Below are positions 3,290 through 55,400 of a stretch of 64,000 nt of DNA, piece by piece. Each line of letters starts with the position of its first letter. Position 1 is the first letter of the stretch. Below the pieces are notes generated by a model. That model was given only the letters and a program-made list of their open reading frames with translations, had not been told where the DNA came from and ran no database searches. The position numbers and the translations under genes are program-made. The stretch is from Oopsacas minuta (lineage: Eukaryota > Animalia > Porifera): assembly GCA_024704765.1 (NCBI GenBank), contig JAKMXF010000365.1:1-64000 (forward strand), in the 5' to 3' direction.

Positions 3290-3290
3290 C

Positions 3291-3400
3291 TCTGAGCCGT
3301 CAATTATCAGAATTGTATAGAGTTAGTCCAGATAAATAAATTTAAAACTAATCAATGATTTGTCATTATATTAATTAAGGATTCTCATATTAAACACAAC
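3291..3400. repeat. ~110-bp satellite-flanking linker module
   Basis: TCTGAGC..AATTATCAGAATTGTA..GAGTTAGTCCAGATAAATAA..TTTAAAACTAATCAATGATT. Inverted copy at ~12840-12950; partial copies at ~6942-7010 (+) and ~9237-9304 (-). Confidence 0.85.
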
Positions 3401-3404
3401 ACGA

Positions 3405-4093: not shown

Positions 4094-4409
4094 ATATCAC
4101 CTTGACTTTGAAATCTATTTGTTAATACATATGTATTTCACTATAAGGATACTGCTTTGATCAATCGAGTATCTAATTAACTGATGAGGTAAATTATTCA
4201 ATGTGATACAGGTTAGGGATGTCTAAAGTGTCTATAGGATATATACACACTGTAAACGAGGTGGTTAGTTGTCCCTTTAAATCAGAATCTAAATTCACAT
4301 CATGGACGATATTCGAAGCACCAAGCTTCAAAATAAGTACTAGACAAGTAAAAATTTAGTGATTTATACACTTGAAACATCAAAATGAAAAATTCGAAAT
4401 CAAATGCCA

Positions 4410-4433
4410 CGCCCCCCTGGTTAAGAACCCCTG
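4410..4433 (-). mobile_element. hAT-like terminal inverted repeat (solo end); second copy ends at 2388
   Basis: The minus strand reads CAGGGGTTCTTAACCAGGGGGG, matching the CAGGGGTTCT(C/T)AACC start typical of hAT elements. No partner end or TSD found in the window. Confidence 0.5.
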
Positions 4434-6034: not shown

Positions 6035-9000
6035 TACACAATTGCTACAAAATCAACGAATTAGAAATTGTAAGGGCAGCATCCGGACAGAACATATCCA
6101 TTATAAATAAATCAAATAGTAATCATGCAAGGATGTACCGTGCGATGGAGTTACTCATGACTCGTGAGTCGGAGTTCGGAATGAACGACTTGCGATAAGC
6201 GATAAAATTAATTAATTGATTATTACATTCGCCAAAAAGACAATGACTTAGGCATGATGACTCGAGTCATTGAGTTGCTCATGATTTGTGACAATTTCCT
6301 GTCACAAGTCTTTTCAATGACTTGTGAAATATTATGAAAAACCAAGGGCGTGAAGTGTGTTAAAAATGAGGGCGCAGCATTGAATGCATGTGCTGCACAG
6401 TAGCCCTGAGTATTGACTATTGGCAGAATAGGTGTGGCGCCCGGTTTGAGCGAGAAAATGGGAATCTACTGATATCCTCGTACTGTACGTGTAAATGTCA
6501 TCAACGAGATGATTAGCGACTTTTACCAGTGGCGGCATGCTCTGCGTATTTGGCCACGTGTAGTAAACGGTAGTTATCCCCACAAAATAACAGTATACTT
6601 ATACAAATACACGTACTACTATGAAAGAAGTTGTGTAGAACTTCGATCTAGAGCAATGCAAGGAATTATTTAGGACACAGGAAACCACTCTATGCATATA
6701 ATTTTAGGAGCAAGAAAATTGAGAATCTTTCCCTATAGTAACACTAATTTCCTGGTTTAGGCGTATGAAAAGTTGAAAGGAGAGCAAGGAACATACTTCG
6801 ATGACATGTATAATCATCTCCATGATGCAATAAGTGTAGAATTACCATGTTTAATCGTATAGATGGATAGTATTTCCTTCCAGTTATCAAAATAATTAAC
6901 GGAAAATAGCTTACAAATCTACTACAGAGTGACTACGTATCTGAGCAGTAAATTATCAGAATTGTAAAGAGTTAGTCCAAATAAATAAGTTTAAAACTAA
7001 TCAATGATTGAATAATAATTCTATAATTAGAAATTGTGTAAGTAAATTTTACAAGAATTATAATTATATTTATAACTAGTAGGACCCAACCTCATTTTTC
7101 TCTCGACTTTTCTGTGTACTCAAGTTAACAAATATCTTTGATAAAACAAAATAATTATTTCAAATCAATCTACAGGAGCTATCAAATTCATAGTTTCATG
7201 ACTTATATACTTGATTTCAATCAATGCTGGTCGTCCAAACAGTGAGGGCATATCTCAATTCTATTGATAGGTTTCTGCCTAGTATTTAAATATCCTTCAG
7301 ATGATGTTGTCAATGCAGTAATAACTCTGTTAAAAATCCTATGTAGAATCGAACAGGACAATCGACTGATGAGACAATTTCTTGTTGGTAACAGTAAAAC
7401 TAAACTTAATCAACTCTCAATTTGGAGGATAGAATTTGAGAATTTTGATTTCTGGAGATTTGAGTGCTTGTCAAACACCATTCCATTGTTATCTCAGCGA
7501 AATACTATCTGCCACCAGCAATTGCTTATCGAAGAATAAAGTTCTCAATCTAGACTCGAAAAGGAACTTGGAATAATGCCGTGGTGAATTAAAGAGGAAA
7601 CTACCAAAGTTACAGTCTGAATGGTGCTTGTATTTCTAGTACATATGTGTATTGTATTCATAATATTCAAATACAGTTTGTTTCTAGTTATTGTAGTAGT
7701 TATAGTGATAAATAATAATCACCACTATCCATCTCTATTCTATAATATTCAATGTAGACTATAATTATTGTCATTTCATCATGTATCACTATTGTTGATA
7801 TCTTACTATAGGAAATTAACCCTCCATGACTGTTAATACTACACCATATATTGTAATTGGGTTTATACACAATTCTTACCATTTCTTTTCTGGTAATTCA
7901 CTATACTTCCTCACAGAGAATATACTCCTGAAATTCATGATCAACTTCTGGAAGCAAAACTCGATGAATCCCCGTCAAGAGCGACTGTGTTTAGATGGTA
8001 TCAAAAGTTTAATGAGGAGGGACTTTCTTTAAAGGACGATCCCAGAGTGGGTCGCCCTCCTTCCTCGACAGACGACGTCCATATTCATCAAATTCGTCCA
8101 TTAATTGAAGCTGAACCTAAATAGTCAGTTCGAATACTAGCTGATGCAACTGAGATTAGTAGAGAATCGGTTAGACGCATCCTAGTTGAGGTACTGGGGT
8201 TAAGAAAGGTCTGCTCTGTCTGGGTCCCACACCTGCTTTCTAAGGCTAACATGGACTCTAGGGTGGTCTGTGCTCAAGAAATCGTCGAGATGATTGATAA
8301 ATACTCAATGGCCGAACTTCTAAGGTGTTGGGCTACTGAGGATGAGAGATGGGTGTTCTTTGATCCTCATCTAACAAAGGCAGAGAACAAAACATGGCTG
8401 GCCCCTGATCAGAAGCGTCCTCGAGTTGTCCGACCTCAACTGACAAATCGTAAGGCATTAATCATCTTGGCATTTACTGGTGATAGTAAATTCAGCGTTG
8501 CTCTCCCACCCCCAAAGGGACAATAAATGCAGAGGTATATATTGACTTTATTCAATCCACTGGAGAAAGATGGCGTAAACTTCACTCAAATCCAACAAAA
8601 CTTTGTGAATTATGGGGGCAACATGACTACACTCGACCCCATACTGCTAGAGCCACAATGGAATACCTTAAAAGGAGGGATATGATGTGAATTAAAGAAT
8701 CGCCATACAGCCCAGACTTGAATCAGTGAGATAGGTGAGTATTCAAGGAGATTAAAAAGCATCTACGGCAAGATGAATATTCTAGTGCAGAAGAAATCCA
8801 AAAGAAAACGCTGCAATTCATGAGACAGCTGACAGCAGAACGTTTCCCACTGGAAATTCAAAGATTTTATAGACATTGTAAGTCTGTGATTGAATGCATG
8901 GGGGATTACGTTTCATAAATCCAAAATGGGAACTTATTAACAATACGAAACCAATTAAATACTAGGCAGAAACCTATCAATAGAATTGAGATATGCCCTC

Positions 9001-11625
9001 ACTGTTTGGACGACCAGCATTGATTGAAGTCAAGTATATAAGTCATGAAACTATGAATTTGATAGCTCCTGTAGATTGATTTGAAATAATTATTTTGTTT
9101 TATCAAAGATATTTGTTAACTTGAGTACACAGAAAAGTCGAGAGAAAAATGAGGTTGGGTCCTACTAGTTATAAATATAATTATAATTCTTGTAAAATTT
9201 ACTTACACAATTTCTAATTATAGAATTATTATTCAATCATTGATTAGTTTTAAACTTATTTATTTGGACTAACTCTTTACAATTCTGATAATTTACTGCT
9301 CAGATACGTAGTCACTCTGTAGTAGATTTGTAAGCTATTTTCCGTTAATTATTTTGATAACTGGAAGGAAATACTATCCATCTATACGATTAAACATGGT
9401 AATTCTACACTTATTGCATCATGGAGATGATTATACATGTCATCGAAGTATGTTCTTTGCTCTCCTTTCAACTTTTCATACGCCTAAACCAGGAAATTAG
9501 TGTTACTATAGGGAAAGATTCTCAATTTTCTTGCTCCTAAAATTATATGCATAGAGTGGTTTCCTGTGTCCTAAATAATTCCTTGCATTGCTCTAGATCG
9601 AAGTTCTACACAACTTCTTTCATAGTAGTACGTGTATTTGTATAAGTATACTGTTATTTTGTGGGGATAACTACCGTTTACTACACGTGGCCAAATACGC
9701 AGAGCATGCCGCCACTGGTAAAAGTCGCTAATCATCTCGTTGATGACATTTACACGTACAGTACGAGGATATCAGTAGATTCCCATTTTTCTCGCTCAAC
9801 CCGGGCGCCACACCTATTCTGCCAATAGTCAATACTCAGGGCTACTGTGCAGCACATGCATTCAATGCTGCGCCCTCATTTTTAACACACTTCACGCCCT
9901 TGGTTTTTCATAATATTTCACAAGTCATTGAAAAGACTTGTGACAGGAAATTGTCACAAATCATGAGCAACTCAATGACTCGAGTCATCATGCCTAAGTC
10001 ATTGTCTTTTTGGCGAATGTAATAATCAATTAATTAATTTTATCGCTTATCGCAAGTCGTTCATTCCGAACTCCGACTCACGGGTCATGAGTAACTCCAT
10101 CGCACGGTACATCCTTGCATGATTACTATTTGATTTATTTATAATGGATATGTTCTGTCCGGATGCTGCCCTTACAATTTCTAATTCGTTGATTTTGTAG
10201 CAATTGTGTAATGTCAGATTCTATTGCAGACCCCAATCCTCTCCAACCCCTGAAATGTTCCCGAAGCCTTTTGAGTTGGATCAATTCCTTTGAAAGCATA
10301 AAATCTGAGCTCTCTTCTATCACTGATCTCTCAGATTCAACACTACTAATTGATTGCATGATATTTGCTACAGCTGATAAGACTGCTCTACCTTGTACTC
10401 TATTTCAGGAATATTCAGATATTCAAAATGTGAAATCTCATGAGTATACTTTCAGCAAAATACTTGCTGTATTTTCTGAATTTTTCCGAATCCCACTAGA
10501 ACAAGCTATTTCTCTCCCAGACCTGTTATCTGGGAATGAGCATGAATTAATAAAGTTGTTACTCATTTTCTTGGCCTACGCTGTACAGCAGAAACCGAAT
10601 GAACTTATAATTCAGGGAATCCTGAATTTGGATATTGAGGTCCAGGTTTGTCTTCTAAAATTATTTGAATACATGTTCCAAATACTTGACAGAAAACAGA
10701 TAGAAGCTGTTCATGACTTAGTCACAAATCTAGACCTAGAGACTGAAGAGACACCTGAAACAGACCAAAAGGTTGAAGAAATAGATAAATTTATGATGAC
10801 AGAATCACCTGATATCACAAACACAGTAACCCCACCACTTCAAGCATCTCCTAACCTACTCACACTGGAAACTCCTGTCTTACAAAAAGTTCCCCCTCTA
10901 TACGAATCCCCTGCAAACGAAGATTATCAGAAACAGGAAAGTTTATTCGGTGTAACGAGCAGATATTACGGATTTGACTCTCCAGCAGCCTTGAAATGGA
11001 TAAACCGACTGGAGATAAAACACCCTCTAAAGCGTCCTGACTTCACTCGTCCAACACCCGCTAAAATCAATCAACTGCATCAGTTACAACACAAAATCAA
11101 TCAGCAACAAGAAGAGTTCCACATACTCAGAAATTTCTGTCAAGAGACAGAGACCGAATTGATTGAAAAAATTAAACAGTTAGCTGAGTCTGAATTAACT
11201 TGTAAAGAAATGAGTGAGAAATATAATCAATGTGATGACCTACTCGGTGAGAGAGTTTCATTATGCGATCAGGTTCATTCTTTAGAAAGGGAAAAGCAAT
11301 CACTCAAGAAGGATGTTACTGCCCTCATTGGTTACAAAGATAAATGCGAGAATCTCCAAGACATGGCCGATGAGCTAGCTAGCACTGCTAAGGGAAACCA
11401 AACATTAATAATGAATGCTGAAAAGTTACAACTCGAATTAACTTCTGAGAAAGATAAAATGTTCCAGCTTGAATCAGAGAAAACTATTCTAGAAAGAACT
11501 AACATGGGATACCAAGCTTCTGTACAATTACTTGGACAAGAAAAACAGGTTATACAGGAAGAATTGGAATTAGTCAGAGAGAGATTAGTTCAGCTGGAGG
11601 GAGATATCTCTGCTCTAAAGAAATT
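4570..11625. repeat. Large inverted duplication: arms ~4570-7291 and ~8955-11625, spacer ~1.66 kb
   Basis: Arms are reverse complements (e.g. 7261-7291 CTATTGATAGGTTTCTGCCTAGTATTTAA vs 8956-8985 TTAAATACTAGGCAGAAACCTATCAATAG). Each arm includes the gene and ~1.2 kb of upstream DNA. Confidence 0.95.
7895..8918 (+). mobile_element. Inactive mariner (DD34D-type) transposase pseudogene
   Basis: Translation gives HTH ATVFRWYQKF..LKDDPRVGRP, WVPHLL, TEDERWVFFD, QHDYTRPH, SPYSPDLNQ*D and C-terminal CKSVIECMGDYVS*. It has several in-frame stops and a frameshift near 8520. Confidence 0.9.
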
Positions 11626-11629
11626 TTGA
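10211..11629 (+). CDS. Second, inverted copy of the HOOK/NuMA-type CH + coiled-coil protein, truncated (472 aa)
   Basis: Paralogous to 4421-6034 with many amino-acid changes. Homology stops at ...ALK and the ORF ends KKF* just before a 13-bp satellite. Confidence 0.7.
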   Translation: MSDSIADPNPLQPLKCSRSLLSWINSFESIKSELSSITDLSDSTLLIDCMIFATADKTALPCTLFQEYSDIQNVKSHEYTFSKILAVFSEFFRIPLEQAISLPDLLSGNEHELIKLLLIFLAYAVQQKPNELIIQGILNLDIEVQVCLLKLFEYMFQILDRKQIEAVHDLVTNLDLETEETPETDQKVEEIDKFMMTESPDITNTVTPPLQASPNLLTLETPVLQKVPPLYESPANEDYQKQESLFGVTSRYYGFDSPAALKWINRLEIKHPLKRPDFTRPTPAKINQLHQLQHKINQQQEEFHILRNFCQETETELIEKIKQLAESELTCKEMSEKYNQCDDLLGERVSLCDQVHSLEREKQSLKKDVTALIGYKDKCENLQDMADELASTAKGNQTLIMNAEKLQLELTSEKDKMFQLESEKTILERTNMGYQASVQLLGQEKQVIQEELELVRERLVQLEGDISALKKF

Positions 11630-11638
11630 CTGAATTAT

Positions 11639-28226: not shown

Positions 28227-31200
28227 TTAATAAAACAGATTTGTTTGTTCTGCAAAATCTTCCATGTAGTGTCCAGGGGGCTTCCGAGGAGGCTTGACAG
28301 CGGCCTGGCGCATAGCAGAGGGGTACCTCTGAGGGGCAGGAATATACTGAGGCATGGGTACATACTGCTGGGGGTAGTATCGGGGGATGACAGGGGGGTA
28401 TGGACCAGGGATATAGGGGGCGGAGTACTGCTGGTATTTCTGGGCTGCTTTCTGCTGCTGGTGAATAGAGGCAGGAACAGATCCAGTCTGTATAGTCCTG
28501 TGTACTACTACTGGTTTCCTGTGTTTACTCTCTTTCCTGGAAACAAATAATTTTACAAATATGCTATACAATGATAAATCATATTTACTTGTCAAATATT
28601 CCAAATATTCCTGTCTTCTGTTTGTCCTTAGGAATGTGATGTGTAGCCACCTCTGCTGAGAATGACACGTTCTTTTCTACTTGACTGTCCGGTACCTTCT
28701 TCCCTAGCAACCAGATGGAATGTGTAACATTTGTTAAATCAGGATAGTAACATACCTTTGTCTTTCCTCTTGTCTTTCCTCCGACTCTTATCCTCCTCAA
28801 TATCTTTGCTCTTAGATCGATCAGCTGAACGCCTCAGTCTTATTCTATCTTTAGATTTATCTGTTCTATTTATAGCTACTTTAGCTTTATCAGCTGATTC
28901 AGATATTTGAGCGGGCTTGACAGGTGATTGGTTTTTAGAGCTGAGCTCAGTCAGCTGTTCTCTGGTACGTCTCACATGTGCTCCCTCCCTCAAATTCCTC
29001 AGAGAAGGAGAATCTATAAATAGTAACACTTCAACCAATAATATTACAGAATTTAATTTACCAATAAACTAACCGAAAATATTTCTAACTTGAGTCAGCT
29101 GTTCGGATTTCTTAACTAAACTACTGACTACTCCTTTCTTTATGTCTTCAAGTGGCACACCTGTCAACTGTGCAACTTTATTCACACCTTTATCTTGTGC
29201 AACTTTACTCTCGGGTATGACTGGTATTTTTCGTTCTGGGGTATGAATCTCAGAATCCCGCGTTTTCTCAGAAATTGCGCGTAAATATTTCCACCCCTCA
29301 CTTGCCCGCTTAGGTACTACAGGATCCTCTACAGAGACCTGCTTCTCGAAATGAGAGATGTGAGCTAATACTCTCCCCTTCGGAGCTGTCGGAGTATCCT
29401 CTGCCACTTCTGCCACTTCTGCCACTTTATTGAGAGGTGTCACAATAGGAGAGGGGGCTACAGGTGGATCAGGTGCTAGGGTATCGTCCTCAGAGGACAC
29501 GTAGCCCTCTGTAGCCAGCTGTGCATGTCTCATAGAGTCTGCTAAACTGTCCTGTAAGGAGATCCTTGATCCTCCGGACAGATCTATCCCTTTAACATCC
29601 AGACGGTAAGGGCTCCCTAAATATACAAATAAATATAGCAGTATACCCTAGCAACTAATATACATACCTGGAATGTGTACTCCTGACCATTTAAGTGCTA
29701 TAATGAAGCTCCCAGAACTCTTGGGTTTATATCTACAGCAGAGGAGCTTAGTGTCCTCTGGTGTAGGGTCTACATACACCACAAGTGAGGTGTTAAATCC
29801 CTCAACACTCACAGCTAGCGCTCCTCTGCCCGCACTATGAGTAGACACGAAGAACTCTGTCCTATCTCCTACCTATATACATTCCTTATGTCATATCGGT
29901 AACTAAGTTAATATTAAATAAACTAACCATCGCCTCGTGTAGACCGGGGCCATAAGCTCTACATTGAGAGGGGTCTGTATCACTTGGTACTATCTCTACG
30001 AAGAACGGTGAATCAGCTGATTGTTTGTCTCCATATCTGACACTAACTGAGTATACTCCTACTTCAGGCGGATCTATATTCACCTATGCAATTAGATGAA
30101 TTAATTACTTCAGTATAATTAACATTACAATGGTTAACCTGATAGAATCCTTGTCTGTATTGATGCATTATAACTCGAGCAGTCAGCTGATTAACCTCAC
30201 AAACAGCTGATACAGACAGCTGACTAGCAGGAGAGCTAGTAGCATCTACAGTAAAGTCTACAGGCTGTCCTAGTGTGAACTTCATGTCAGGATTGAGGGC
30301 GGGACCTGAGAGGAGACAGTCCGTGTCCTCCTGGCCCATATTTTGGTGACAACTGACTTTAAAGGGAGAGCCTATTAGGTACAGGAGTTAACAATAACTA
30401 TCAGCTGTAATTTTATTGGTTAACAAACCTGATATATGATCTCCATCCATTGACACCTCTACCAAATAGGCGCCAGGTCTCTTGGGTGTGTACTCTACCT
30501 TATAGTCTCCCTCTCCCCTCTCCACCAACCAGTGCTGTACCTCTCCGTGTATAGAATGTACTTTAACACCTAAGCGACCGGATTCCAAAACATCGGAATG
30601 TTTAGACCGGATGTAGAACTCTGACAGAGTACCTACACAACCAAATCATCATTCAAGTATGTTATATAATATCATCATTAGTACAAACACACAAACAAAT
30701 ACCTGACACAGCTCTCTGTAGCCCTGTTCCATAAGCATGAGTATTCATAGAATCACTAGCTATAACCTCTAAATAGAAAGGACTATTTTCTAGTTGTATA
30801 TCTCCTAGTAACACCTCTAGCTCGTGTTCTCCTGACTCCCAGGGTGTGAAAGTTGCTACAGTGTGGCCTAGACCTCTAATAAACAAACAAGCAAACAAAT
30901 AAACAATAAATATTTACACATCGTATAATACTAACAACAACAGAATTCCACAAACTTTATAATGTGGTTGTTTTATAAATGTGTCAGCTGTCACAAATAT
31001 ATTAATACTTACTCTTCTTGAGTAGCTACTATGTACTCAGCTGTTGGTCCCCTAGCGGACACTTTAATCGTGATGTCATTATTCTCACATACTCCTGCTA
31101 GCTCGTACAGAATAATAAACTCCAATTCCTCTCCCACGACTCCTAGCTCCCCCTCCAGGGCTGTCCCGCTCACTGACACTTGAGTTATGTCACATACCCT

Positions 31201-33794
31201 TACTCTAGAAATATACATGTAGAGGATATGCGTACCATAGCGTATCCTAGCAACCACTCACCTGAATGGGGAGTTAGGAATGTGATCAGTCCCCCATTTG
31301 AGAGAACACACAAATTCCCCTAAACTCCCGGGCAACAGAGTAGCCACAATGGTATCTTCTGTTCTATTAATTTGACAATCAATTCCTCTGTCACAATTGA
31401 AGTGTAATTGGGCGGGACCAGCTGTTGCAGCGGTAAGTGTAATTTTCATTGGGCAGCCAATTTGCATACAATTAGGGAGACATGAAGGGGACAGGAGGAT
31501 CAGCTGATTAGCATCTGAGACAGGGAGGAGGACAGGAGACCCTGCGATATGTATCTCCCCTGCTAATAGGCTTATCTATAGAATAACACATTAGAATACC
31601 TATTGTATGTTAAGGTAACTAGGATAGTACGAATACATTATTCCCAACATCTTATAAGTCAATCACATACCTTATACATTCCTGTGTTGTCAGGAGTTAC
31701 CCACACATAACTGTAGTTCCTGTGAGTCTCAGTAGCTACAGATAGAGGTAGCCCTGTCTCTGAGTGTTTAGCCTCCACAGACAGCTGGGTCAGACGACCC
31801 TGTTTGGACCTGACACACAGACAAATAGCCTCTCCTACTTTAACACCTGGTAGGTGTCCTGTCTCTGGGTCTCTGGGAGCGTCTAGATGGTATGAAGGGG
31901 GTAGGACAGCTGACAGCTTAAGGGGGGAACCTCGTATAGGAACATTATCCCAGAGGATGTGTAGTGTGATATCTCCCTCATCCTAATATAGTATCATTAA
32001 GATTTCTACTGACAAATACAAATATGTAATCTAACCTTAGGATGAATACAAATAGCTCGAATGCCATTCTGCCTAACAACGCTTGTCAGGTGTATTGATA
32101 TATTATTTGAGTAAATTACTTGTCCTGTCAATACACCCTCTCCTGCTCCATCGGTACTTACCAACACCTCGTACTCTTTGGATACCTAGCAACCGCGTAG
32201 GAATTCAAACATATCATAAATATTTTTACCCATAAGTGATCGGGTTGCTAACCACCTGTATTTCTTCATGAATATTCTCTACTAGCTTTACTGCAGTAGG
32301 ATCTGTTACTAGGATACGGTATGGTGAGTTAGGAATGTGTTCTCCACTCCACTTTATAGCTATATATAATACACCACTTCTACTAGGCTTATAAATGACA
32401 CTAATAATCTTGTTATTATGATTAATTGAGTGATCTAACACCTCTCCTTTATCATATCTATAATTTGATTATATAAAATGTAGGATAATTCATTGGTTAA
32501 TAAACTAACTTAATTTCTATAATCAGCTGTCCTCTACCAGCTGTTTGGGTGTTAACAGTAAAAGAGCTAGTCACTCCTACACTACAGGAAGTGATACCTC
32601 TGCCAACAGCTGAGCAGTTATCAGCAACAGACCCTACCCTAGCATTCTTAATCTGTAATAGGAATGTTTGTAAAGAGATAAGATCTACTTTTCCTTCCCT
32701 GAGTTCTCTGGCTGTTATTATCGGTGATATTTCTAATTACATAATAATAACACAATATACTATACACATTCCTACTAACCAATCATATCTCTAAGGAAAC
32801 TAAACATCTCAGAGAGGTCTCGTAATGTCCTCTTAGCCTCCGGACACTTAGCTAGGACCAGTCTCCCCAAGAGATCTCCGTTCCTCCAGTCCTCGGGGGA
32901 TAGTCCTCTGGGGGCAGAAGACCCTAGTAAGCCTCGTAACCACACAACTAGGGAAGTAGTCATAGCAACAAGGAATAGAGATAGGTATGTAGCTAATGAT
33001 TCCTCATCTAATGAACAGCTGCTTAGTGATTCAGCTGATAGAATATCTTCAACACCTAGCTCTCTATTAGGAACATTCCTTAGTTACTAAGGTAACAACA
33101 ACAACAACAACAACAACAACAAACCTCTTAGCTGTGAATATCAGCATAGCATGGTTACCATGATTCAGTGAGGAATGTGTAGGAGATAAATAGGAGATTA
33201 GTTTATATAGGAACATTCCATTATTCCAACTCGTTGCTAGGTCAGGAATCTATAAAGAACAAATAAATCAGCTGTTATATGTATAATCTATAATTAGTAA
33301 CATTTTCAGACGGTAAGACAGATCGTATCCATAGGAGGACAGATTTCTTGGACCCTGATCTCTTGGTGTCACCTGACAGCTGGTAGCGGACTATCATACT
33401 CCAGAGGATACCTGCTAGTACCTCCGGGTCTCCTCTGAGTACATCTTCTGGTCCTATTGGTTATATTAGTATATAACAACAAATGTAAGGTGTGAATTAT
33501 TTACAAACCTATCCTCTGTACCCTAACACCTTGTTCCTGCATAACACTCAGACAGGTGTGAATATTTTCTATCTTTCTAGATCTTACTCTAGGCTGATAA
33601 TGGATTTTGATTGGTTCCTTGAGTCTCATAAGGGAACCACACAACTCAGCTAATAGGACCCCATCACTGAGTCCAGAGGACAGATCCGTGACTACTCTCC
33701 TCTCTGGAGGGAGGGGGGACCTAAATTGGGCCTCTCTCAGGTGGTAGTTGGTCCAACGGAGAAAGGTGTCTAGTCGACAGGGAAGGGTATCCAT
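28227..33794 (-). CDS. Filamin-family protein with three CH domains, several Ig-FLMN repeats and a long low-complexity C-terminal tail (jitterbug/FLN-2-like architecture)
   Basis: CH1 LDTFLRWTNYHL..DLSDGVLL..KIENI; CH2 VLLWIRSVLP..SWNNG..DEESLATYLSLF; CH3 LVVWLRGLL..DWRNGDLLGRLV..VDLISLQTFL; Ig repeats with IKWSGEHIPNSP, LKWGTDHIPNSPF and VRYGDKQSADSPF. Exon boundaries only partly resolved. Confidence 0.82.
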
Positions 33795-34101
33795 TCTAAC
33801 AGTTGGAGTGTTAAGTAATAAGTAAATAACAGTATTTACTAATATTTCTCAAAATCAAATAAGTAATATAATCTTAACAGTATTGATAACAATAAATGAA
33901 CTAAATTCATGTGATTATATCGGAACTGAACTATGTTATATCGGAACTAATGGTGTAGTCATGTTAGTATCAAATGATATCAACATATCATATGAACATA
34001 ACTTATGACCACGCCAGTTACTAGGAAAATTTAAACCCAGAGGTAGTAATGAGTTCTTATAAATACTAAACAAACAAACAAACAAACAACAAACAACAAA
34101 C

Positions 34102-35037
34102 ATGCTACACCTGCTATATGTTACTCTGACAATAACGGTACTATCGGTCACCTGTCAAATGCCTAGACCCCTCTGGAAATGGTCCCAATCCTCTTCCTCC
34201 CATCTCAACTACTCGGTACCTGACAGTTCCTCTAACGCAGAGTACAATGGTATGAACTCCTGCGGTGGAGGAGGGGACTCCCGGGTCTCCTGGTCCTGTC
34301 CTCACATGATGCTCCTCTCTCCGGATATGCAGTATGCGGCACAAACAGATAACATTCCATGGGCCTTATACGGTGTCGCAGGAATAGGACAATCGTCTGA
34401 CTGCGGGAAATGCTACCAGTTACAGCTGAATAACGCAGGTACTCCTGTGAGGACATATATTGTACAAGCGGTTAACACGGGATCAGATGTGTCTAGCGGA
34501 CAGTTTGACGTACTCGTAGGGGCGGGAGGGTTCGGGATATTTAACGGGTGTGCCTCTGATTGTAAATACGGACAGACCTGTTCTGGGGGTCACTGTAACT
34601 ACCCACAATATACCGGGAACTTCCAAGCCTGGACACCTGATGGGAACTGTTATGGGGGAGGAGTACATGACCCCAATGGGTGCAATAACCTTATTACAAC
34701 CCCATCGGGACAGCAATCATTCGCAGAGGAGACTCTAATCTACGGATGTAAGACCGCTATCCAACAAGGATACCATCAGAACTTTAAAGTCAATTACAAG
34801 CGAGTAGCTTGTCCCAGATCTCTATACCTAGTTACCGGTATTAAGTCTAGGAATGATGACGCCCTCCTGGACCAACCTAGCCCCTTTCTAGCTCTAGACG
34901 GTACAGGACAGGCTACTACTACCATGGACTGCTGTAAACCTACTTGTGCATGGAGACAGAATATAGGAAGGTACACCGTACCTGAATTCCCTAGTCTATA
35001 TGTGTGTGATAAGAATGGTTACCCTCTTACCAATTAG
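34102..35037 (+). CDS. Secreted GH45 endoglucanase-like protein, intronless, apparently circularly permuted (311 aa)
   Basis: Signal peptide MLHLLYVTLTITVLSVTC. GH45 motifs: CGKCYQL..IVQAVNTGSDV..GQFDVLVGAGGFGIFNGC..KRVACPRSL..TG..RNDD, then TTTMDCCKPTCAW..VCD at the C-terminus. Confidence 0.85.
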   Translation: MLHLLYVTLTITVLSVTCQMPRPLWKWSQSSSSHLNYSVPDSSSNAEYNGMNSCGGGGDSRVSWSCPHMMLLSPDMQYAAQTDNIPWALYGVAGIGQSSDCGKCYQLQLNNAGTPVRTYIVQAVNTGSDVSSGQFDVLVGAGGFGIFNGCASDCKYGQTCSGGHCNYPQYTGNFQAWTPDGNCYGGGVHDPNGCNNLITTPSGQQSFAEETLIYGCKTAIQQGYHQNFKVNYKRVACPRSLYLVTGIKSRNDDALLDQPSPFLALDGTGQATTTMDCCKPTCAWRQNIGRYTVPEFPSLYVCDKNGYPLTN

Positions 35038-35403
35038 TGATTAGTGGAGAAGGTGTTTATATGTATATACCTGTTATAATTAAATTATAGAGTAATCATC
35101 TATTATTTATGGGGTAGCACCGTTACTATATTATGAAAATCAGCTGATTATGTTATTTACTATTTAGGAAAGTGAAACAATTCTCAGATCTATTTGTATA
35201 ACTATATATTCCATCTGTCCGATATATACTACTCAACCTGGATACAGGCCTGTAGACACAGACATTATGTAACACTGCAGTTTTGTGGGGTCTTTATTTA
35301 CTTATAATATTCTATTATAACTCCTTATAATTAATCCCTTATACTACTGGATCCTCCTCGGGGCGGTTACAGGGATATTATTAATCACATGTCCTGTTAG
35401 CAA

Positions 35404-35853
35404 ATGGCTACTCAATCCTCTGACAAGGAGGAGACAGATCTCGAGTCTCTCATGCAACATCTCTCTGAGGACAAGAAAGCCCCTAAGGGACGGAAAGAGG
35501 AACTGTTAGAAGACCCCTTCCCCCTAGCTAAGATTCTAAAATCAGCTAGCTCCCTCCTTGTAGTGCTGATCCTATCTCTAGCTTGTGTAGCTGCCTTTAT
35601 ATCAAGATTATTTGCTGTTATAAGATTTGAGTCTATTATTCACGAATTTGATCCATGGTTTGTTTGTTTGTTTGTTTGTTTGTTTGTTTGTTTATTTGTT
35701 TACTTGTTTATTACTTGTTTACAGGTTCAACTATAGAGCTACTCATTACATGGTAAACAAAGGATTCTACAACTTCCTGAATTGGTTCGATGAGAGAGCT
35801 TGGTACCCTCTTGGCAGGATCGTAGGAGGAACTGTGAGATATATTATTATTTG

Positions 35854-35888
<35 letters not shown>

Positions 35889-38800
35889 TACATATCCTGA
35901 TAGGTATATCCTGGCTTGATGCTTACCAGCGGATTAATACACTACATACTTAACTCCCTACACATAACAATACATATAAGAGATGTATGTGTGTTCTTAG
36001 CTCCGATATTCAGGTATTATTATATCCATGGTGCATGCTATATAGAATAGTAGTTACGTAATTTGTGACATAATTGAGTTCCAGTTACAGTACCAATATA
36101 GCATTTACAATATATAATATTCTTATAGTGGCCTTACAGCTATTGCTATGTTCTTAATGACCAGAGAGGTATGGAGTACAGGAGCTGGTCTATTAGCTGC
36201 TGCCTGCATGTCTATAGGTATTATACAATCTATTACCGTATTATAGAACCAGGGATATATTGGGGAAGGAATTTCTTTATCTTAATATTTGGATTATGTA
36301 ACTATTATATCGAGGTGTGAAATTGTACAAATATGGTCCCAAACCGTCAAAGTAAGATAATTCCATTGGATCGCTTGAACTTAGATATAATTAACAGAGT
36401 TAAATAAAATTTTAATTATTTATTCATTCTAATTATAGCTACTCTTATTCTAAATATAGAAATTTATTAATCGTTGTTCTGTATCCGATATTTGGCTTTA
36501 GTTCCAGGTAATAACACCTATTGTATTTATAGTTCCAGGTTACATATCTCGGTCAGTAGCTGGTTCTTATGACAACGAGGGTATAGCTATATTCGCTCTT
36601 CTGTTCACATACTTCTTATGGGTGAGTAATAAATAAATAAATAATAACAAATAATAAATACAAACACAAATATTATTCTCTTTTCTTTCTGAATTTGCTC
36701 TTCAACTTCTTTTTTGTAAATCTTATAATTTTGCTTCTGTTTTTTGAATTACACCCGGAATGTAAACAAACTAGACAACAAGGTAATATGAAAAACAATA
36801 ACAAAACAGAACTAATAATAATTAATCCACCCTTGTCCCTCTCCTCAAATGCAGCTGTACTATTTACTCGTCTGTAGAATATAAAGTGATTACACTGATT
36901 CTGTATTAGTGTATTGTTTATTGTTTCTGTTGATATTAGGTTCCTGTTTAAGAAACACCTTCCTACTTCTTCCACGATAAATTCTAAAAAGGTGTTATGA
37001 ATTATAAACAGAGGAACATATCTCATGACCAATTATGGTCGTTATGTACCGATTAGTTAACAAATATGGCCTACAGGGGTGCAAATTGCCCCATGTTCCC
37101 CTAGGGTTATAAAATATATTATTTACATGTTTATTGATAAACTTACGAGAATAACAAAACTCTGTCAACAACAACAACAACAACAACAATAATATCCAAA
37201 TAATACTAATTTTCATTTTCTATTCTGTAATTTTCCTAGTATTTATGAGCAGAGGAATGCCTAATCTGTTTATCATTGACACTTATAATCAGTTATTGTT
37301 TGATCAATCACTACTCAATTAGATCCTATTCATCTTACATTCCTTAGATCTACCTTAGTTACCGGATATAACACTATTTGAAAAGTATTTATGATTAGAA
37401 GTACTAATATTTCCTGTTTTAATGAATATTGTTTATAGTTACGATCTGTGAAGACAGGATCTGTATTCTGGGCTACCTCATGTGCTATATCTTACTTCTA
37501 CATGGTAGGACATATTTTCACACCTCTCGTATGCATATATTTATAATATGAATATTCTGTAGGTGTCGGCATGGGGAGGCTATGTTTTCATAATAAACCT
37601 TATACCACTTCACACATTTGTCTTAATACTCATGGGGAGGTTCTCTGTTCGTCTGTATGTAGGTAAGCGATAGTTCCAGTTGTTCACACGTCTCTAATGC
37701 TGTTATTTGATTGGTTCCTATATATCTATAGCTTATACAACATTCTTTATACTGGGTCTCATTATGTCAATGCAGGTTCCATTTGTTGGTTTTCAACCAA
37801 TCAGAACCAGTGAGCACATGGCAGCAGCTGGTTAGTTACCATGGTTACGAATTTTTACACAAATATGTGATATATTATATTATTATAGGAGTATTTGCAT
37901 TAATTAATGCGTATGCATTCCTTGATTACGTCAGAGGATTAGTAACTAAGAGAGAATTCACACTCCTTTTCTATTTTATGGTTCTGGTATGTGCAGGTGT
38001 TGTGTTCCTAGCTGTATTGGTTCTTACATGGAGTGGTTAGTTACGATATTTTCATATGATTAATTACAGCTTTTATTGTTATTTGTATTTGCAGGTTATG
38101 TGGCGCCCTGGAGTGGCAGATTCTACTCCTTATGGGATACAGGTTACGCAAAGATTCATATTCCAATCATAGCATCTGTATCAGAGCATCAGCCTACTAC
38201 CTGGGCCTCTTTCTTCTTTGATTTACATATTCTTATCTGTGTATTCCCGTCTGGTATATGGATAGTGTTACGGAAGATTACTGATGAGAGAATATTCTGT
38301 AAGTTATGGACCAGAGATATATAATTCCGTCATCATGATGGTATTTATAACAGCTGTTACCTATCAGGGGTCCACAGGATCTCACTTGTATTGCAGTCTA
38401 TAGGAGGGAACTGCTGCTCTATAATCTCACTAATCCATGGTCTGCTATTACATATATCTAAGGTGTTATAATATGATTAATCTCTAGTGGTGCTGTATGG
38501 AGTATTTGCTGCGTATTTCGCTGGTGTTATGGTCAGATTAATGCTTACTTTCACACCTATTGTATGCTGTCTGGGCGCTATAGCTATATCTCAAACTCTG
38601 ACACAAAACTTCTCTTCTGAAGAAGCTAAGGATACAGAACATTCCAATAAGCCTAAACCTGTTGCTAAGGTAATTCACTTTGAGAATATTGTCAGAATAA
38701 TTGAGATATTAAGGTGTGAAATATTTGTTGTTGTTTACCGTATATATTCTGACTAATAACAGCAAATAATCATCTCGTTATGAGAGAACTATTTACTTGT

Positions 38801-40143
38801 ATCTTGTCTAATAGACGCGCCAGAAAGGTGCGAACAGAGACAAGAGAGAGGACACAACACCTGAGGAACTAGATACACATGATGACTACTTAAATTCCGG
38901 TACTAAGAACTTCGTTGTCATGGCAATAGCTCTCATCCTAATGTTATTTACGGTACATTGTACTTGGGTAACATCCAATGCTTACTCCAGTCCATCTATC
39001 GTACTAGCTACTCAAGGTTCAGATGGGTGAGTTCCTACAGTGTGTAATTCAGACATTCCTATTCATATATCCCGTATCTAGGAGCCGTATGATCCTGGAT
39101 GACTTTAGGGAGGCCTACTTCTGGTTGAGTCAGAATACAGCTGAGGATGCTACCGTGATGTCCTGGTGGGATTATGGGTACCAGATAGCTGGCATGGGTA
39201 ACAGAACTACTCTAGTGGATAACAACACCTGGAATAATAGTCACATAGCTCTGGTATAATTCTATTTATAGTAATAATATTATATAGCAATTATTACATT
39301 ACATTCTATCTATCTTGTAGGTAGGTATGGCTATGTCCTCCCCTGAGGAGAGGGCTTACAAGATAATGAGGAAATTAGGTGTGAACTATGTGCTAGCTAT
39401 ATTTGGAGGGTTTATTGGTTACTCAGGTGATGACATCAATAAATTCTTATGGATGGTGCGTATAGCACAAGGAGAACATCCCTCTGTTATAAAGGTATAT
39501 CCTAGCAACACATATTAAGGATAGGAATGTTATGATTATGTATAAACAGGAATCTGATTATTTCACACAAAATGGAGAGTTTAGAGTAGACAGTGAGGGA
39601 GCACCTACCCTCCTCAACTGTTTGATGTATAAGATGTGCTATTATAGATTTGGTGAAATACAGGTTTGTTTATTTACTTGTTTGTTTGTTAGTTTGTGTT
39701 GTTTGTTTATTGTTGTTTATCTGTTAGTTTGACTCCAGGAATCCTAGTGGATTTGACAGGACTAGGAATGTTGAGATTGGTAACAAAGATATTTCTTTTA
39801 AACATTTGGAGGAAGCATATACTACTGAACATTGGCTAGTCAGGATATACAAGTTTGTTTACTTGTTTGTTTGTTTACTTGTTTGTTTACTTGTTTACTG
39901 TTTAGAGTCAAAGATCCCTCCAACAGGATAGTAGACGACGATGCTAAAATTACATTTAGAAATAAGAAGACTAAATATAGTCCTTCCACTAAGGTAGCTT
40001 AATCATATGATATTTTATTATCACCTATGATCCCTGTGTTCCTATAGAAGTATGGTAAGAGGAAAGGAATTGTACCTGATAAACTGAAGGTGACAAAAGG
40101 TAAATCATACAAACAGCTGACGGGTAAAAAGGTCAGACAGTAG
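35404..40143 (+). CDS. STT3B: Oligosaccharyltransferase catalytic subunit STT3B, multi-exon
   Basis: [43 protein letters not shown] (B-type residues), [49 protein letters not shown] and a basic tail. Confidence 0.96.
36673..37216 (-). CDS. Nested antisense gene in an STT3B intron: small type-I membrane glycoprotein (126 aa, 2 exons)
   Basis: Exon 37216-37147 (donor GTAAGT) plus exon 36983-36673 (acceptor TTTTTAG) splice in frame: [80 protein letters not shown]. Confidence 0.55.
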
Positions 40144-40529
40144 AGATTAGTTAGAGAATATTTTGGATAATTTAGTATATTTATAAATAATAATAATTGT
40201 TATAATTCTATCAGAATATGAAGTGTCGCCTGCTGGAGCGATAATATAAGTGGTATCAGTGACACTATTCTCTCTAACACCTGTGTAAATACATAATCAT
40301 GTAAGGTGTTATACGAACTAATCAGCTGATACGTATTTACTATAATCAGATATTCATGACACTGCTTAATCCGATTGGTCAAATGTCAAAATCTCCCATC
40401 TACCCCACATTCCTATTACTCATTAATATCACCCCGTAGACAGCAATACTGTTCTACTCCTTCCAATATATTCATTAACACTAGTGTAACATAACAATAC
40501 ATATAGTGTATACTAATACTGACAGCTAT

Positions 40530-42163
40530 CTACTTCCTTCCGTCCCTCTCTGTCTCATCCTCTTCCAGTAGATAGGCCGCTCTGTACTCATCTGTTCCTG
40601 GTATTCTAAGAGCAGGGTTCTTAAATGTTGTCCCCCTCTCCCCTAGAGACGTGTACCCTTGGTCATATAGGGTACAATAAGGTACCTTATGTTCCCAAAT
40701 GAATGTCCATATGTCTCTATAGCTCCAGGTTAATATAGGCATAACTCGCATGAAATTTGGCCAATCCCTGTCCGTACTTTGAAAGGTGTGAAGTCTGTCT
40801 GAATGAGGGTCGATATTCCTTGTACCCATGAGTATAGCTCTTATATTTGGGTACTTATCTCTAAATTCAGTTAACACCTTTTTCATGTTCCCCTGTAGCA
40901 GTACGATATTCAGTTTGTTATCTTTTTTTGTCTGTTCTATGAATTCTTCAATTTCTGGGAATGTTTCTCCTGTGTTGATGTTTAATATTATAATATTTGA
41001 TAACTTCCTGCCGCTCTGTGTCATTACTATCTTAACCAGATACAGCAGGACCGTACAGTCCTTACCTCCGTTAAATGCTATGCAAAATTCCTCGTCAGAA
41101 TATATCACACAAATATTTTGTATTACTTTAATCGCTTCTTTCAATTTTATGTCAAATAATTTCAATTTTTCCGTTTGAAATATTTCTTTTGATTTTGATT
41201 CAATTTTATTTTCTAATCTCACTTGATATTCTGGAAATAAATTTGTTTGTATTTCAGTAACACATTTCTGTAAACAATCTTTGTTTACAGAATCAATTGT
41301 CAGTTTAGTTATATATTCTTCACACTTCACAGGATACGATCCTATCTCAACTTTTCCTTCCCATTTATTTTGAATTTCTTGTAACTTTTCTGCTAATAAC
41401 AATTCATAAGAATTAAAATAAATTTCTTTACAAAAGAATTCAATATTTCCTTTGAAGTAATCCTTGCATTCTTCAAATACTTTCTTGACATATTCTGGTA
41501 TCCCTGGAAACACAAATATGTTGTTTAACTTAATTAGTGGGAACCAGCTGACCAATAGATTATTAGCGCCAAAATACACCTACAAATATACACACATTAA
41601 AATGCTAGCGAGATCATTTGTGTAATAAATTTTGCATAACAACCTCAGATCCTTTTGGAATGTTAGCCATCCTACTCTCCCTGGCCTGAGTATCGTTTAG
41701 TCCTACATTCCTAAGGTATTCCACTAATCTACTGTCTGTACACATATCTCTCTGCATTCCTTTACCCACTCCTGCAAACGTTACGTCATCATGAGTGGGC
41801 CCTACTCCTCCTAGATACAGCTATGATAAATTGATGAAGTCAAATATCTTAAGCAGATATCCCATTGGTTAAATTTATTTACTAAAAGGTGTGAAAATAT
41901 GAACTTTAGACCAATTCCTTACCCAGGTATCTCCCCCCTATTATACCTGTAGTTATGACGTAATCATATTGTGTAGCTAGCTCTTTAACACTATCAGCTA
42001 TAACATCAATAACATCCGGTATAGTTAGTATCCTATGAGTACGTATACCCCTCTTGAACAGCTGATTAGTTAGGTACACAGAATTAGAATCCTGCACTCG
42101 TCCCTTCAATATTTCATCCCCTATAATAACTAGCGCAGCTGAGGGAGAGATCTGATTGGTCAT
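40530..42163 (-). CDS. FLAD1: FAD synthase (molybdopterin-binding/CinA-like domain + PAPS-reductase-like FAD synthase domain), 3 exons
   Basis: AALVIIGDEILKGRVQDSNS, TTGGVGPTHDDVT, IAFNGGKDCTVLL, MGTRNIDP, MRVMPILTWSY..YDQGYTSLG..T..NPAL..ERDGR. Confidence 0.95.
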
Positions 42164-52464: not shown

Positions 52465-55400
52465 ATGGCAGAAGGTCTCTACAGACTAGGAGACTATGTA
52501 TACATGGAGAGTACGGCTCCTCCGCAACCCTATCAGATATGTAGAGTGGAAGAACTCAAGAAGAACACGAAGGGGTCTGTTGAAGTTTATGTAAAGTGCT
52601 TCTTCAGACGTAAGGACCTCCCCCAATCCCTGGTCCAACTAGCTGACAGACACGCTAATCAGCTGGAGGAGGATCATATATGTGAATTGCAGGAAGAGAG
52701 GGAGAGATTGAGGACTAGTAATCCATTGGCTGCTGAACAAGGTTAGTTCCAATTGTAACTAAGGGGTTGACACATATTTCATTAATTTGTTATTCTACTT
52801 ATAGCTAATAATTGGATACTACATATAATTAATAATTAACACCTTCTGTTACCATATATGGTCATTGTTGTATAGTTATATTAGAATTGTTGACTTATCT
52901 GTAACTAATAAACAACTTTAGGTATTTAATTGTGTGTTCTATTAATAGCTATACTTAGTTCCAGTTTCATATTGTGTTACGTAGCACAATGGATATCCAT
53001 CTTAGTTCTTATAAAAGCATTCAGAATATGTATATACCACTGAATACGGACATTATACCTATACAGACACACAGACACACAGACAGATACACAGACATAC
53101 AGACACACAGACAGATACACAGACATACAGACACACAGACACACAGACAGATACACAGACATACAGACACACAGACACACAGACAGATACACAGACATAC
53201 AGACAGACAGATACACAGACATACAGACACACAGACACACAGACAGATACACAGACATACAGACACACAGACACACAGACACACAGACAGATACACAGAC
53301 ATACACATACACAGATACACAGACAGATACACGGACATACAGACATACAGACACACAGACAGATACACAGACATACAGACATACAGACACACAGACAGAT
53401 ACACAGACATACACATACACAGATACACAGACAGATACACGGACAAGTACAAAAACTAACTCACAAACAACAAACAAATAAGCTAACAAACAAACTGATC
53501 TTTGATCATCTAGTTAACAACATATGAATAATTCAACATTTCTACTTTATTGAGTTTACTCACACAACAATAACAACACGCTAAGCGCTGCAAACAAGTA
53601 TTATAGTAAATACAAACAAACAAATAACAACAACAACAACAACAACAGGAAGCTAATGCATTAGATTATACATGTACTATGTACTATGTGTGAGTAAACA
53701 GGAGGGGACCATGGATATTCTATCAATTGTTACTGAGCTCATTACAGAAGTTATCAAGATCTGTTTGTGTGAATCTATCACCTTTACTGCAATCTCTTCC
53801 CATCACGTAACACATCTCACAGAGATTTCTTTGATGTCTGCCATTATCTGCCACTTCACACCTTCTACCCGGAACAAGTCTTGTTGGGAGAACAGCTGAT
53901 GAACATCTACTGCATTTTTGTTTTTTGTTTTGGTAGGAATTAGCGCTATTCCATTTTCTGCCACATGGACAACAAAAGTAACCAGTCATCTTATGGTCCC
54001 CTGGGTCCAGGTCTATATCAAGAGATATCAGAATGGGAGTGCATATGTCTCCTTCACAGTTCCTTATAGTCTCCATCTCAGTCCTACTTCCAAATATTTC
54101 GTAGCATATTGTTTTGCAGATTGGACAGGTGTTTGACTCCTCAAACCATTTGCTAATACAGCAGTAGCAAAATGAATGAATGCATGCTAGAATTCCAATC
54201 CTCCCATTTGGTTTCTCCTGACAGATGGCGCAAAGATCTGTGTCAATATTTTCGCGGGTAGGACTGCATTCAATAAACCCGGTGTCAGCACAATTGTGGC
54301 ATAAATTGTCCTTGTTGGTGGCTGAAGTGGCGTGACAATATTCACATGTTTGATGTGTCGCCATCAGTTTGTAAATGTTTAAGAATGTGTGCATGAGTTT
54401 CCCACTTTTCTATTTATGAGATTTTCCTTTGTGATTTTGTTCTATTTGTGTTTTTATGAATAATATTTCTGACATAATCTGTTCTAATTATAGACTGTTT
54501 ATTTGGGATTTGCTTTATAATATTTACTAAATACACCGCAGACAACTTTATTGGGGAAACTATTTTTAGCGAAAATTATGTTGAATTTTCCAAAAATTCA
54601 AAAAGTAATTTACCCTCTAATTTGGAACTAATTATAGTGTTAGTTCCAATATAGAATATTATCCCTCGGCGGGAGATTAAGTCTCAATCTTGGATGTGTT
54701 TTCCCATAACTTGTTAACACCACAAACAAACAAACAAATATACATGTATATTACTCGTCAATAATATTGAAATAATTGTTTGCAATAGTAAATTTATGGA
54801 ATATTAGCAAGGTATTACTTACACCATTAGGGGTCTACTTATCACCCTATCTCCCTCTCCTATAGATACAGAGAGTCTTGAGGGTATATGGTCCGGTATA
54901 ACCGAGGTGGCGCGTCACCAGCTGAAGCACAGAGAGCTATTCCTGTCCAGACAGATAGAAACATTTCGTATCGATGCTGTGAGGGGTAAATGCACTGTAA
55001 CGGTACTTAATGAATTAGAAAGTCTATTGTCTTATCTGAAAGATGAAGACAAATTCTATTATTCTATGGTTTATGATCCTAACCAGAAAACACTTATGGT
55101 TGATAAAGGTCTGTATGATTAATCATATTTTCACACCTTTGGTCAATTCCACCTTGCGTATAATTCGAATTTGAATCTTACAAATGTCTGACACGATTAT
55201 TTGCAAACAATTTGAATGTTGTTATTATTATTATTTTGATTTACAGGAGAGATGCGTATCGGTTTCAGATACCAAGCAGAGATCCCTCCTCTCCTCACAG
55301 ACCCTCTAACAGAGGATCACAGAGAGGTGTTAGATCTAGAAACACCTGTCTGGGTCCCCTCCAAGATCCCAGACGAAGACATCGAAAAGTTTCTAATAAT

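Follow-up and report, generated by a model that had tools for sequence, protein, structure and literature searches.

The window analysed here, a 64,000-nucleotide stretch of DNA from the glass sponge Oopsacas minuta, carries on its forward strand, at 34102-35037, an open reading frame (ORF) of 311 codons with a single stop, the product of which is, by homology, a member of glycoside hydrolase family 45 (GH45), although the topology of its chain differs. The evidence as a whole is best explained by a functional gene, long resident in the Oopsacas genome, the product of which is an enzyme, probably secreted, from a circularly permuted branch of GH45, a reading in which we have good, although not complete, confidence. 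The permuted clade as a whole is more interesting than the single gene. In its most extended form, our proposal is that an unrecognised GH45 clade of permuted order originated in bacteria, is largely invisible to Pfam, spread to giant viruses and was captured once by glass sponges, which now express it at a high level as a secreted β-glucanase; taken with all of these parts, the proposal is tentative and has, in our judgement, somewhat less than an even chance of being correct.

Pfam assigns the protein to GH45 (PF02015, Glyco_hydro_45; 54.5 bits against a gathering score of 27, E 1.9e-14), with only profile positions 37-155 being covered. In phmmer searches of PDB sequences, 10 solved GH45 enzymes were matched, down to E 2e-14, and the alignment with the Thielavia enzyme falls into three pieces, i.e. 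query residues 79-153, 228-254 and 266-307, which correspond to chain residues 66-142, 184-209 and 5-41, respectively; the Melanocarpus enzyme is matched by these three pieces too, likewise in swapped order. A hidden Markov model (HMM) built from the 11 canonical GH45 domains returned by the searches matched twice, with residues 18-248 aligning to model positions 14-205 (76 bits, independent E 6e-25) and residues 267-310 to positions 4-42 (23 bits, independent E 1.4e-8). Profile-profile comparison (hhalign) of the C-terminal segment of the family with the canonical N-terminal segment gave a probability of 98.8% and E 1.2e-16 over 37 columns. Overall, residues 41-254 correspond to canonical GH45 from position ~25-43 to its C terminus, and residues 266-311 to the canonical N-terminal segment (TRYWDCCKPSCAW...C); the canonical order of base segment, then core, is reversed to core, then base segment. 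At the level of sequence these comparisons confirm a true circular permutation of GH45, rather than a tandem-repeat remnant or an assembly error.

An earlier reading of this DNA (the original prediction) had proposed a circularly permuted GH45 subfamily on the basis of the motifs TGSD129...GQFD136, RVACPRSL...RNDD (residues 234-253) and TTTMD276CCKPTCAW, all of which lie where it placed them, and the proposal holds by phmmer, HMM and hhalign on a broader basis than envisaged, with the permuted order extending to more than 240 bacterial, giant-virus and animal-type sequences. It had also anticipated a single full-length match once the C-terminal segment was returned to the front. With residues 262-311 so moved, the order became colinear, but the two HMM matches stayed separate; an extension of ~40 residues lies between them, so a single match was too strict an expectation.

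The wider family was delineated by a search of 5.8 billion proteins, which returned 129 matches, of which ~100 are full length at 33-72% identity, all of these with DCCK ~155 residues beyond the acid motif, and by a profile search of 1.84 billion representatives, which returned 880 proteins at E<1e-3, of which 60 reached E<1e-30, with many of the profile matches spanning profile positions 46-331 in one stretch inside proteins of 350-1100 residues. Among 276 proteins, DCCK follows the acid motif by ~155 residues in 111, and 11 have the canonical order. With one genome taken per prokaryotic species, 118 loci were found, mainly in Myxococcota (Polyangia, Myxococcales) and Fibrobacterota (Fibrobacter, Chitinispirillaceae), all of them colinear through query residue 310-311. 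The domain is C-terminal in the bacterial members, some of which are fused to CBM_2 or to two CBM_3 plus fn3; P0156 has CBM_2 and Big_7, and P0158 two CBM_3 and four fn3. Pfam gave no GH45 match in six of the 10 family members scanned (P0153, P0156, P0158, P0163, P0169 and P0170), which are longer, multi-domain proteins grouping with the bacterial clade and contain the full permuted domain with profile scores of 140-165 bits, and NCBIfam has no model for the five members tested (sponge, viral and bacterial). Given the Pfam misses and the lack of an NCBIfam model, the cellulolytic potential of Myxococcota, Fibrobacterota and giant viruses is likely under-counted.

IMG/VR contributed 18 loci from giant-virus metagenome-assembled genomes (MAGs). 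The genes that neighbour P0060 and P0051 (DUF5772, DUF5891 and DUF5832 genes, TFIIS, HSP70 and TBP) read as mimivirus-type, and each of the two has a GT90 glycosyltransferase gene beside it; P0129/P0094 belong to a 671-kb scaffold of dense orphan genes, and P0061 has a bacterial ABC-transporter neighbourhood. In two giant-virus contigs (L010, 5368-7950; L011, 5125-7920) a large GT90 glycosyltransferase of 860-931 residues is positioned head-to-head with the permuted GH45 gene, a conserved viral pair, the products of which may share a glycan substrate. Giant-virus-type copies also occur on two contigs deposited as bacterial MAGs, L014 (RGVZ01000013.1) and L015 (JAIXQT010000076.1); the domain in L014 is identical to that in L108, a giant-virus MAG locus from IMG/VR, and L015 lies inside the viral clade, such that both are probably mis-binned viral contigs.

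Conservation was assessed in an alignment (A2) of 65 sequences spanning the animal-type, viral and bacterial members. D129, D136 and D276 are present in all 65, and 16 cysteines, including the four of the moved segment (C277, C278, C282 and C302) and their candidate partners in the core, are likewise invariant, as are K279 and W284. D129 and D136 keep the canonical 7-residue spacing and are the predicted equivalents of the auxiliary aspartate and of the catalytic proton donor, respectively; D276, in TTTMDCCKPTCAW, aligns with the catalytic-base aspartate of the (Y/W)DCCKPSC motif, which is found in subfamilies A and B. In Cel45 enzymes Asp10 acts as the base and the conserved acid as the proton donor (PMC9485262). 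W27 and P40 of the N-terminal extension are nearly invariant; the extension itself (residues 20-40) is shared by the animal and giant-virus clades and by the bacterial clade of three members, whereas the main bacterial clade, the members of which begin to match at profile position ~39-49, lacks it.

The AlphaFold2 model made with A2 has a mean predicted local distance difference test score (pLDDT) of 92 and a predicted template-modelling score of 0.89, with the moved segment forming a strand (residues 267-274) that leads into D276, followed by a helix and a strand (pLDDT 89-97). Foldseek against the PDB gave significant matches to GH45 subfamily A only, and against the BFVD viral structures gave no match. 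VIA-align superposed model residues 41-262 on chain residues from ~25-48 to the C terminus of ten GH45-A structures, with Z 12.5-13.9 and a root-mean-square deviation (rmsd) of ~2.7 Å over 162-172 residues; for 5glx, model residues 42-262 lie on chain residues 27-214 (Z 13.9, rmsd 2.7 Å, 172 residues). The superposition on Cel45A that had been suggested as a check thus succeeded for the core (4eng, Z 13.5), but left residues 263-311 unaligned. Sequential aligners in general leave both the first ~25-40 residues of the solved enzymes and model residues 263-311 unaligned, as is expected for a permutant.

Relative to canonical GH45, the first ~40 residues, comprising strand β-1, the base aspartate, the CC-x3-C-x-W element and the fourth cysteine, have moved behind the old C terminus, to which they are joined via a linker of ~11 residues; the chain now begins at canonical position ~43, after a probable signal peptide and the short extension with PLWKW. 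We propose that the relocated segment would re-enter the same place in the double-psi β-barrel (DPBB), with D276 (base) opposite D136 (acid) and with D129 as a helper. Such re-entry is most likely because none of the four cysteines that link the segment to the core in canonical enzymes has been lost, and, with the catalytic residues and cysteines invariant, the chain confidently modelled as a single domain and the roles in Cel45 published, the active site is most likely reconstituted with D276 facing D136. The product would then be an inverting endo-β-1,4-glucanase, possibly with a digestive role on the β-glucans of ingested microbes or algae; the modules fused to the domain in bacterial relatives provide a hint as to substrate.

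The alternative that survives best, although we consider it unlikely, accepts the permuted fold and proposes either another substrate, i.e. chitin/chitosan, peptidoglycan, mannan or xyloglucan, or a non-hydrolytic, expansin-like role in wall loosening or binding. The original prediction had pointed out that T-T-M replaces R-Y-W before the base in the Oopsacas protein; this replacement is family-wide (T-T-M-Q in the viral forms) and, as read from the sequences, may alter specificity. The DPBB relatives include the chitosanase family GH75, the lytic transglycosylase MltA, expansins and barwin, CBM2 and CBM3 modules are also able to bind chitin, and the genes that adjoin the giant-virus copies encode a GT90 glycosyltransferase, not cellulolytic enzymes. 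Against a different function are the strict conservation of the catalytic and helper aspartates across A2, the occurrence of relatives in Fibrobacter, a cellulose specialist, and fused to cellulose-binding modules, and the structural comparisons, in which the best matches by a wide margin are true endoglucanases (Z 13-14), with cerato-platanin, barwin, expansin and MltA giving VIA-align Z values of only 3.4-5.0.

With regard to the origin of the permuted gene, a FastTree phylogeny of 252 rows recovered the permuted family as monophyletic (support 99); its root was set with canonical GH45 domains, the segments of which had been put into the permuted order solely for alignment. Unlabelled and uninspected lineages branch first within the permuted family, and a large, mainly bacterial clade (103 rows, about three-quarters of which come from bacterial genome records) is sister to a group of 124 rows. 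In an IQ-TREE analysis (LG+C20+F+G4, posterior mean site frequency) of 86 selected rows, from which fragments and near-duplicates were left out and which was rooted on the main bacterial clade, the 124-row group is recovered as a trichotomy without resolution between the animal-type sequences (100/99, stem 1.0), the giant-virus-type sequences (99/95) and three bacterial sequences (100/99), where the labels 'giant-virus' and 'animal' are context-verified for only a handful of rows each. The phylogeny that had been suggested for locating the closest permuted relatives has, therefore, recovered bacterial, giant-virus and animal-type clades. The animal-type clade comprises 49 clusters (at the 90% identity level) with 55-72% identity to the query, all called as single ORFs, and other members of it, among the few contexts inspected, adjoin animal-type genes, i.e. 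MICAL, B-box/filamin, calpain, LIM and FLAD1. Two of its sequences, P0023 and P0083, apparently from one contig of 1,290,495 bp, are a full-length copy and a 178-residue fragment of the animal-type gene, which suggests a local duplication or a pseudogene in that species.

The position of the animal clade inside an otherwise bacterial and viral family supports a horizontal origin, and bacteria, rather than the sponge, are the most likely source of the permutation. Our working model is that it would have arisen in bacteria, where the domain serves as the C-terminal module of multi-domain proteins, some with cellulose-binding modules, and that a sub-branch with the N-terminal extension would have spread to giant viruses and, once, into the animal lineage that includes Oopsacas, followed after capture by vertical inheritance in the sponge lineage. 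A purely vertical history, with the gene already present in an early eukaryote or early animal, lost from nearly all other lineages and never transferred into animals, is very improbable. How the animal, viral and small bacterial clades are placed with respect to one another is not settled, and most sequences are without taxon labels, which leaves some room for such descent; however, in searches with limits on length and word, no named animal, fungal or plant protein is among the 129 matches, most of which have no taxon label, although the same database contains many named animal proteins, e.g. for FLAD1. In addition, a GH45 survey of 1101 eukaryotes and 16,401 bacteria reports no sponge (PMC13084967), and the rooted tree places bacteria at its base.

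The transfer into animals favoured by the phylogeny appears to have been followed by long residence. The closest relative, P0002, has 72% identity and is encoded on a 337-kb contig of another species (L002; ENA assembly ERZ25071281), positions 1463-16471 of which are colinear with window positions 29168-42142 in the arrangement filamin(-)/GH45(+)/STT3B(+)/FLAD1(-). Identities between the two loci are 57-82% for filamin exons and 75-94% for STT3B exons, and the single-exon FAD synthase of L002, the named relatives of which are animal enzymes, is 58% identical over 227 residues (tblastx). The GC content of the GH45 ORF is 48.5% (47% at third codon positions), close to that of filamin exon 1 (46.9%) and of other exons, with intergenic DNA at 27-32%. 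The claim that the gene is richer in GC than its flanks is, therefore, correct with respect to intergenic DNA but overstated with respect to the neighbouring exons, which the ORF matches, and we rejected GC as a sign of foreign origin. The lack of introns had likewise been set against a supposedly intron-dense genome; the Oopsacas mean is only 1.59 introns per gene (PMC10280926), such that an intronless gene is unremarkable here. The syntenic orthologue at 72% identity and the host-like GC imply that the gene is long resident and that any bacterial or viral transfer was ancient. Taken together, the results indicate a single old acquisition from the bacterial/viral pool and subsequent vertical inheritance in the sponge lineage; the horizontal acquisition originally suggested is upheld by phylogeny as an ancient rather than a recent event, and the GC and intron arguments for foreignness fail.

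Assembled reads bear on the integrity of the locus. In two DNA-like runs from the source sample, contigs cover 33800-35400 without differences, extending into filamin exon 1 and STT3B exon 1, with a flat depth of ~70-120; these contigs are not independent support because they probably derive from the data used for the assembly. The short-read contigs of these runs break at 34058-34105, where a (CAAA)n-type microsatellite (~34063-34101) abuts the ATG. A run from another study, under another organism label (X5), contains a 1172-bp contig of depth ~7 that is ~94% identical to the gene, but carries one extra base pair after 34653 and lacks 7 bp at the stop codon (35033); it represents a frameshifted copy from a close relative or else an assembly error.

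A recent horizontal origin of the gene, or its entry into the assembly through mis-joined microbial or viral contamination, is scarcely credible and is already contradicted. The gene is intronless, its nearest non-animal relatives are from giant viruses and bacteria, and it sits in a gap of 1.6 kb between two conserved genes, all of which might have suggested such an origin. Nevertheless, the same filamin-GH45-STT3B-FLAD1 position is occupied in a second species at only 72% protein identity, GC content both overall and at third positions equals that of neighbouring exons, the animal clade of 49 clusters has a long, exclusive stem, read contigs run from the ORF into both neighbours, and the 94%-identical copy comes from a different study and organism label. 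The contig is 1.06 Mb long, and the view of the original prediction that the gene is integrated, and not a contaminant, is borne out by this length, by the read contigs over both junctions and by the L002 orthologue, as is its identification of the filamin and STT3B flanks.

The possibility that the apparent permutation is the remnant of a tandem GH45 duplication (the end of copy one plus the start of copy two) or an assembly rearrangement, rather than one folded domain, can be dismissed as practically nil: duplication followed by truncation is a textbook route to circular permutants, and the canonical HMM weakly aligned the N-terminal PLWKW to PsCaW, but each segment is present once in the protein, no other GH45-like sequence or fragment is found in the 64-kb window (tblastn), hhalign detects no similarity of the N-terminal extension either to the canonical N terminus or to the protein's own C-terminal segment (probability 0.1%), the same order recurs in more than 240 independent sequences from three domains, and the whole chain is modelled as one compact domain. 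A single copy of each segment together with an extension unrelated to the moved segment argues for permutation and not for a half-decayed tandem duplicate. For the same reason, the hhalign probability of 0.1%, we rejected the PLWKW stretch as a degenerate first copy after duplication, which the weak HMM alignment had suggested.

Several points weigh against our overall interpretation of a long-resident, permuted β-glucanase gene. As the sequential aligners leave the C-terminal segment unaligned, we infer, rather than observe, the placement of residues 266-311 and the geometry between D136 and D276. The replacement of R-Y-W by T-T-M could change or weaken substrate binding. Synteny with the window was absent for the relatives L003, L013 and L113, and, as few contexts were inspected, assignment to a sponge lineage is firm for Oopsacas and by extension only for the remaining clade members; the donor cannot be named because the trichotomy lacks resolution. 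With respect to expression, a run from the source sample with TruSeq-type adaptors (X4) gave 129 short contigs only within 33820-35023, with depths in the thousands over the ORF and no contigs downstream of 35023, which looks like an abundant transcript, although there is no record of the type of run, and expression cannot be proven from contigs.

The gene model and its surroundings are given in the table below. From M20 onwards the protein is 100% identical to a gene called on contig JAKMXF010000365.1 (1.06 Mb; GCA_024704765.1), the JAKMXF accession series being that of the Oopsacas minuta genome (PMC10280926). The public gene call is of 292 residues, starts at M20 and omits the hydrophobic leader. 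The homologues likewise open with hydrophobic leaders directly before a P-x-x-LW-x-W motif, which supports M1 as the candidate start, and, on the basis of hydrophobicity and of the homologues, the protein is probably secreted. The region between filamin and the GH45 gene is presumed to be a bidirectional promoter for both. Elsewhere in the window, a low-complexity stretch at 52959-53524 is open in several frames on both strands and gives spurious tblastx matches to L004 and L013; these matches, to 53,000-53,450, were considered as possible synteny and rejected as low-complexity repeats.

Features of the permuted GH45 gene and of its neighbours in the Oopsacas minuta window.
Feature	Position	Strand	Basis
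Permuted GH45-like coding sequence, complete, intronless, 311 residues plus stop	34102..35037	+	ORF list; Pfam GH45; full-length homologues
Residues 1-19 (MLHLLYVTLTITVLSVTCQ), probable signal peptide	34102..34158	+	Hydrophobic N terminus read from sequence
N-terminal extension (PRPLWKW...), residues 20-40	34159..34221	+	A2 conservation; pLDDT ~97
GH45 core (DPBB plus loops), residues 41-254	34222..34863	+	VIA-align; HMM alignment
D129 (34486-34488) and D136 (34507-34509), acid motif	34486..34509	+	Aligned to sTGgDLgsnqFDi of solved GH45s
Variable linker, residues 255-265, from old C terminus to relocated N-terminal segment	34864..34896	+	Gap-rich, poorly conserved columns (A1/A2); pLDDT dip to ~89
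Relocated canonical N-terminal segment, residues 266-311 (GTGQATTTMD276CCKPTCAW...C302DKNG); putative catalytic base D276 at 34927-34929	34897..35034	+	phmmer, HMM, hhalign
Intergenic region shared head-to-head with filamin, 307 bp, AT-rich	33795..34101	.	Sequence; GC 27%
Filamin first coding exon (calponin-homology, CH, domain), upstream neighbour	33501..33794	-	ORF; Pfam CH and Filamin on called gene; colinear with L002
STT3B-type oligosaccharyltransferase, several exons, downstream neighbour	35404..39497 (end approximate, last exon match seen)	+	Pfam STT3; exon matches to L002 (81-94% identity)
FAD synthase (FLAD1-like) ORF	40533..41579	-	ORF; tblastx to L002 FLAD1 ORF

As to novelty, which the original prediction had left conditional on there being no permuted GH45 family already described, we found no paper, PDB entry or NCBIfam model describing one. 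No description of a permuted GH45, or of GH45 in sponges or giant viruses, was found in the literature, the coverage of which is incomplete; a survey of canonical GH45 in 18,412 genomes mentions neither sponges nor permutation (PMC13084967), and phmmer against all PDB sequences found no chain with the permuted order. If our interpretation is correct, the Oopsacas protein would represent both the first report of an endogenous cellulase-type enzyme in Porifera and the first natural permutant among GH45/DPBB glycosidases, with the catalytic base and acid being supplied by opposite chain ends compared with every solved GH45. It would provide a natural test of the tolerance of the DPBB active site to rewiring and a new scaffold for enzyme engineering. 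The occurrence of one enzyme clade across bacteria, giant viruses and a sponge lineage would be a clear-cut example of an ancient gene transfer across domains to an early-branching animal, and may give a hint as to how glass sponges, and the hosts of the viruses, handle β-glucan walls.

Among known systems, the closest are the GH45 subfamily A enzymes (Humicola insolens EGV/Cel45A, 2ENG/3ENG/4ENG; Thielavia terrestris, 5GLX; Melanocarpus, 1L8F; Neurospora, 6MVI; Cryptopygus, 5H4U), with which the Oopsacas protein shares the core fold (27-28% identity over ~170 residues), the sTGxD...FD acid motif, the D-C-C-K-P-S/T-C-x-W base motif and the cysteines of the N-terminal segment. It differs from them in that its chain is permuted with the base segment at the C terminus, and in having the extra PLWKW extension, a longer Cys-rich stretch (C154-C194), T-T-M in place of R-Y-W, and Gly in place of one cysteine of the CCxC element (DCGKC). 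The DPBB is also common to GH75 chitosanase (7TVL-7TVP), MltA, expansin domain 1, barwin and cerato-platanin, and a conserved acidic residue at the GH45 proton-donor position is shared with other DPBB carbohydrate-active proteins (PMC9485262); the Pfam Barwin model matches the Oopsacas protein at E 0.01. These other DPBB proteins, however, lack the DCCKPxCxW segment and the loop and helix decorations of GH45, and their similarity is far lower.

In beetles, springtails, oribatid mites, nematodes and molluscs, GH45 genes are attributed to fungi (Busch 2019 and Muelbaier 2024, as cited in PMC13084967). As described there, the animal enzymes of fungal origin resemble the proposed Oopsacas enzyme in being endogenous, secreted and accounted for by a horizontal transfer with later vertical spread in the lineage concerned; unlike them, with their canonical order and nesting among fungi, the Oopsacas gene is permuted and nests with bacteria and giant viruses.

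The textbook natural circular permutation of a glycosidase catalytic domain is that of the GH70 glucansucrases relative to the GH13 α-amylase family. There, as in permuted GH45, a whole clade keeps its fold and catalytic residues in permuted order, but the GH70/GH13 fold is a (β/α)8 barrel rather than a DPBB, the chemistry differs and there is no sequence relation between the two cases.

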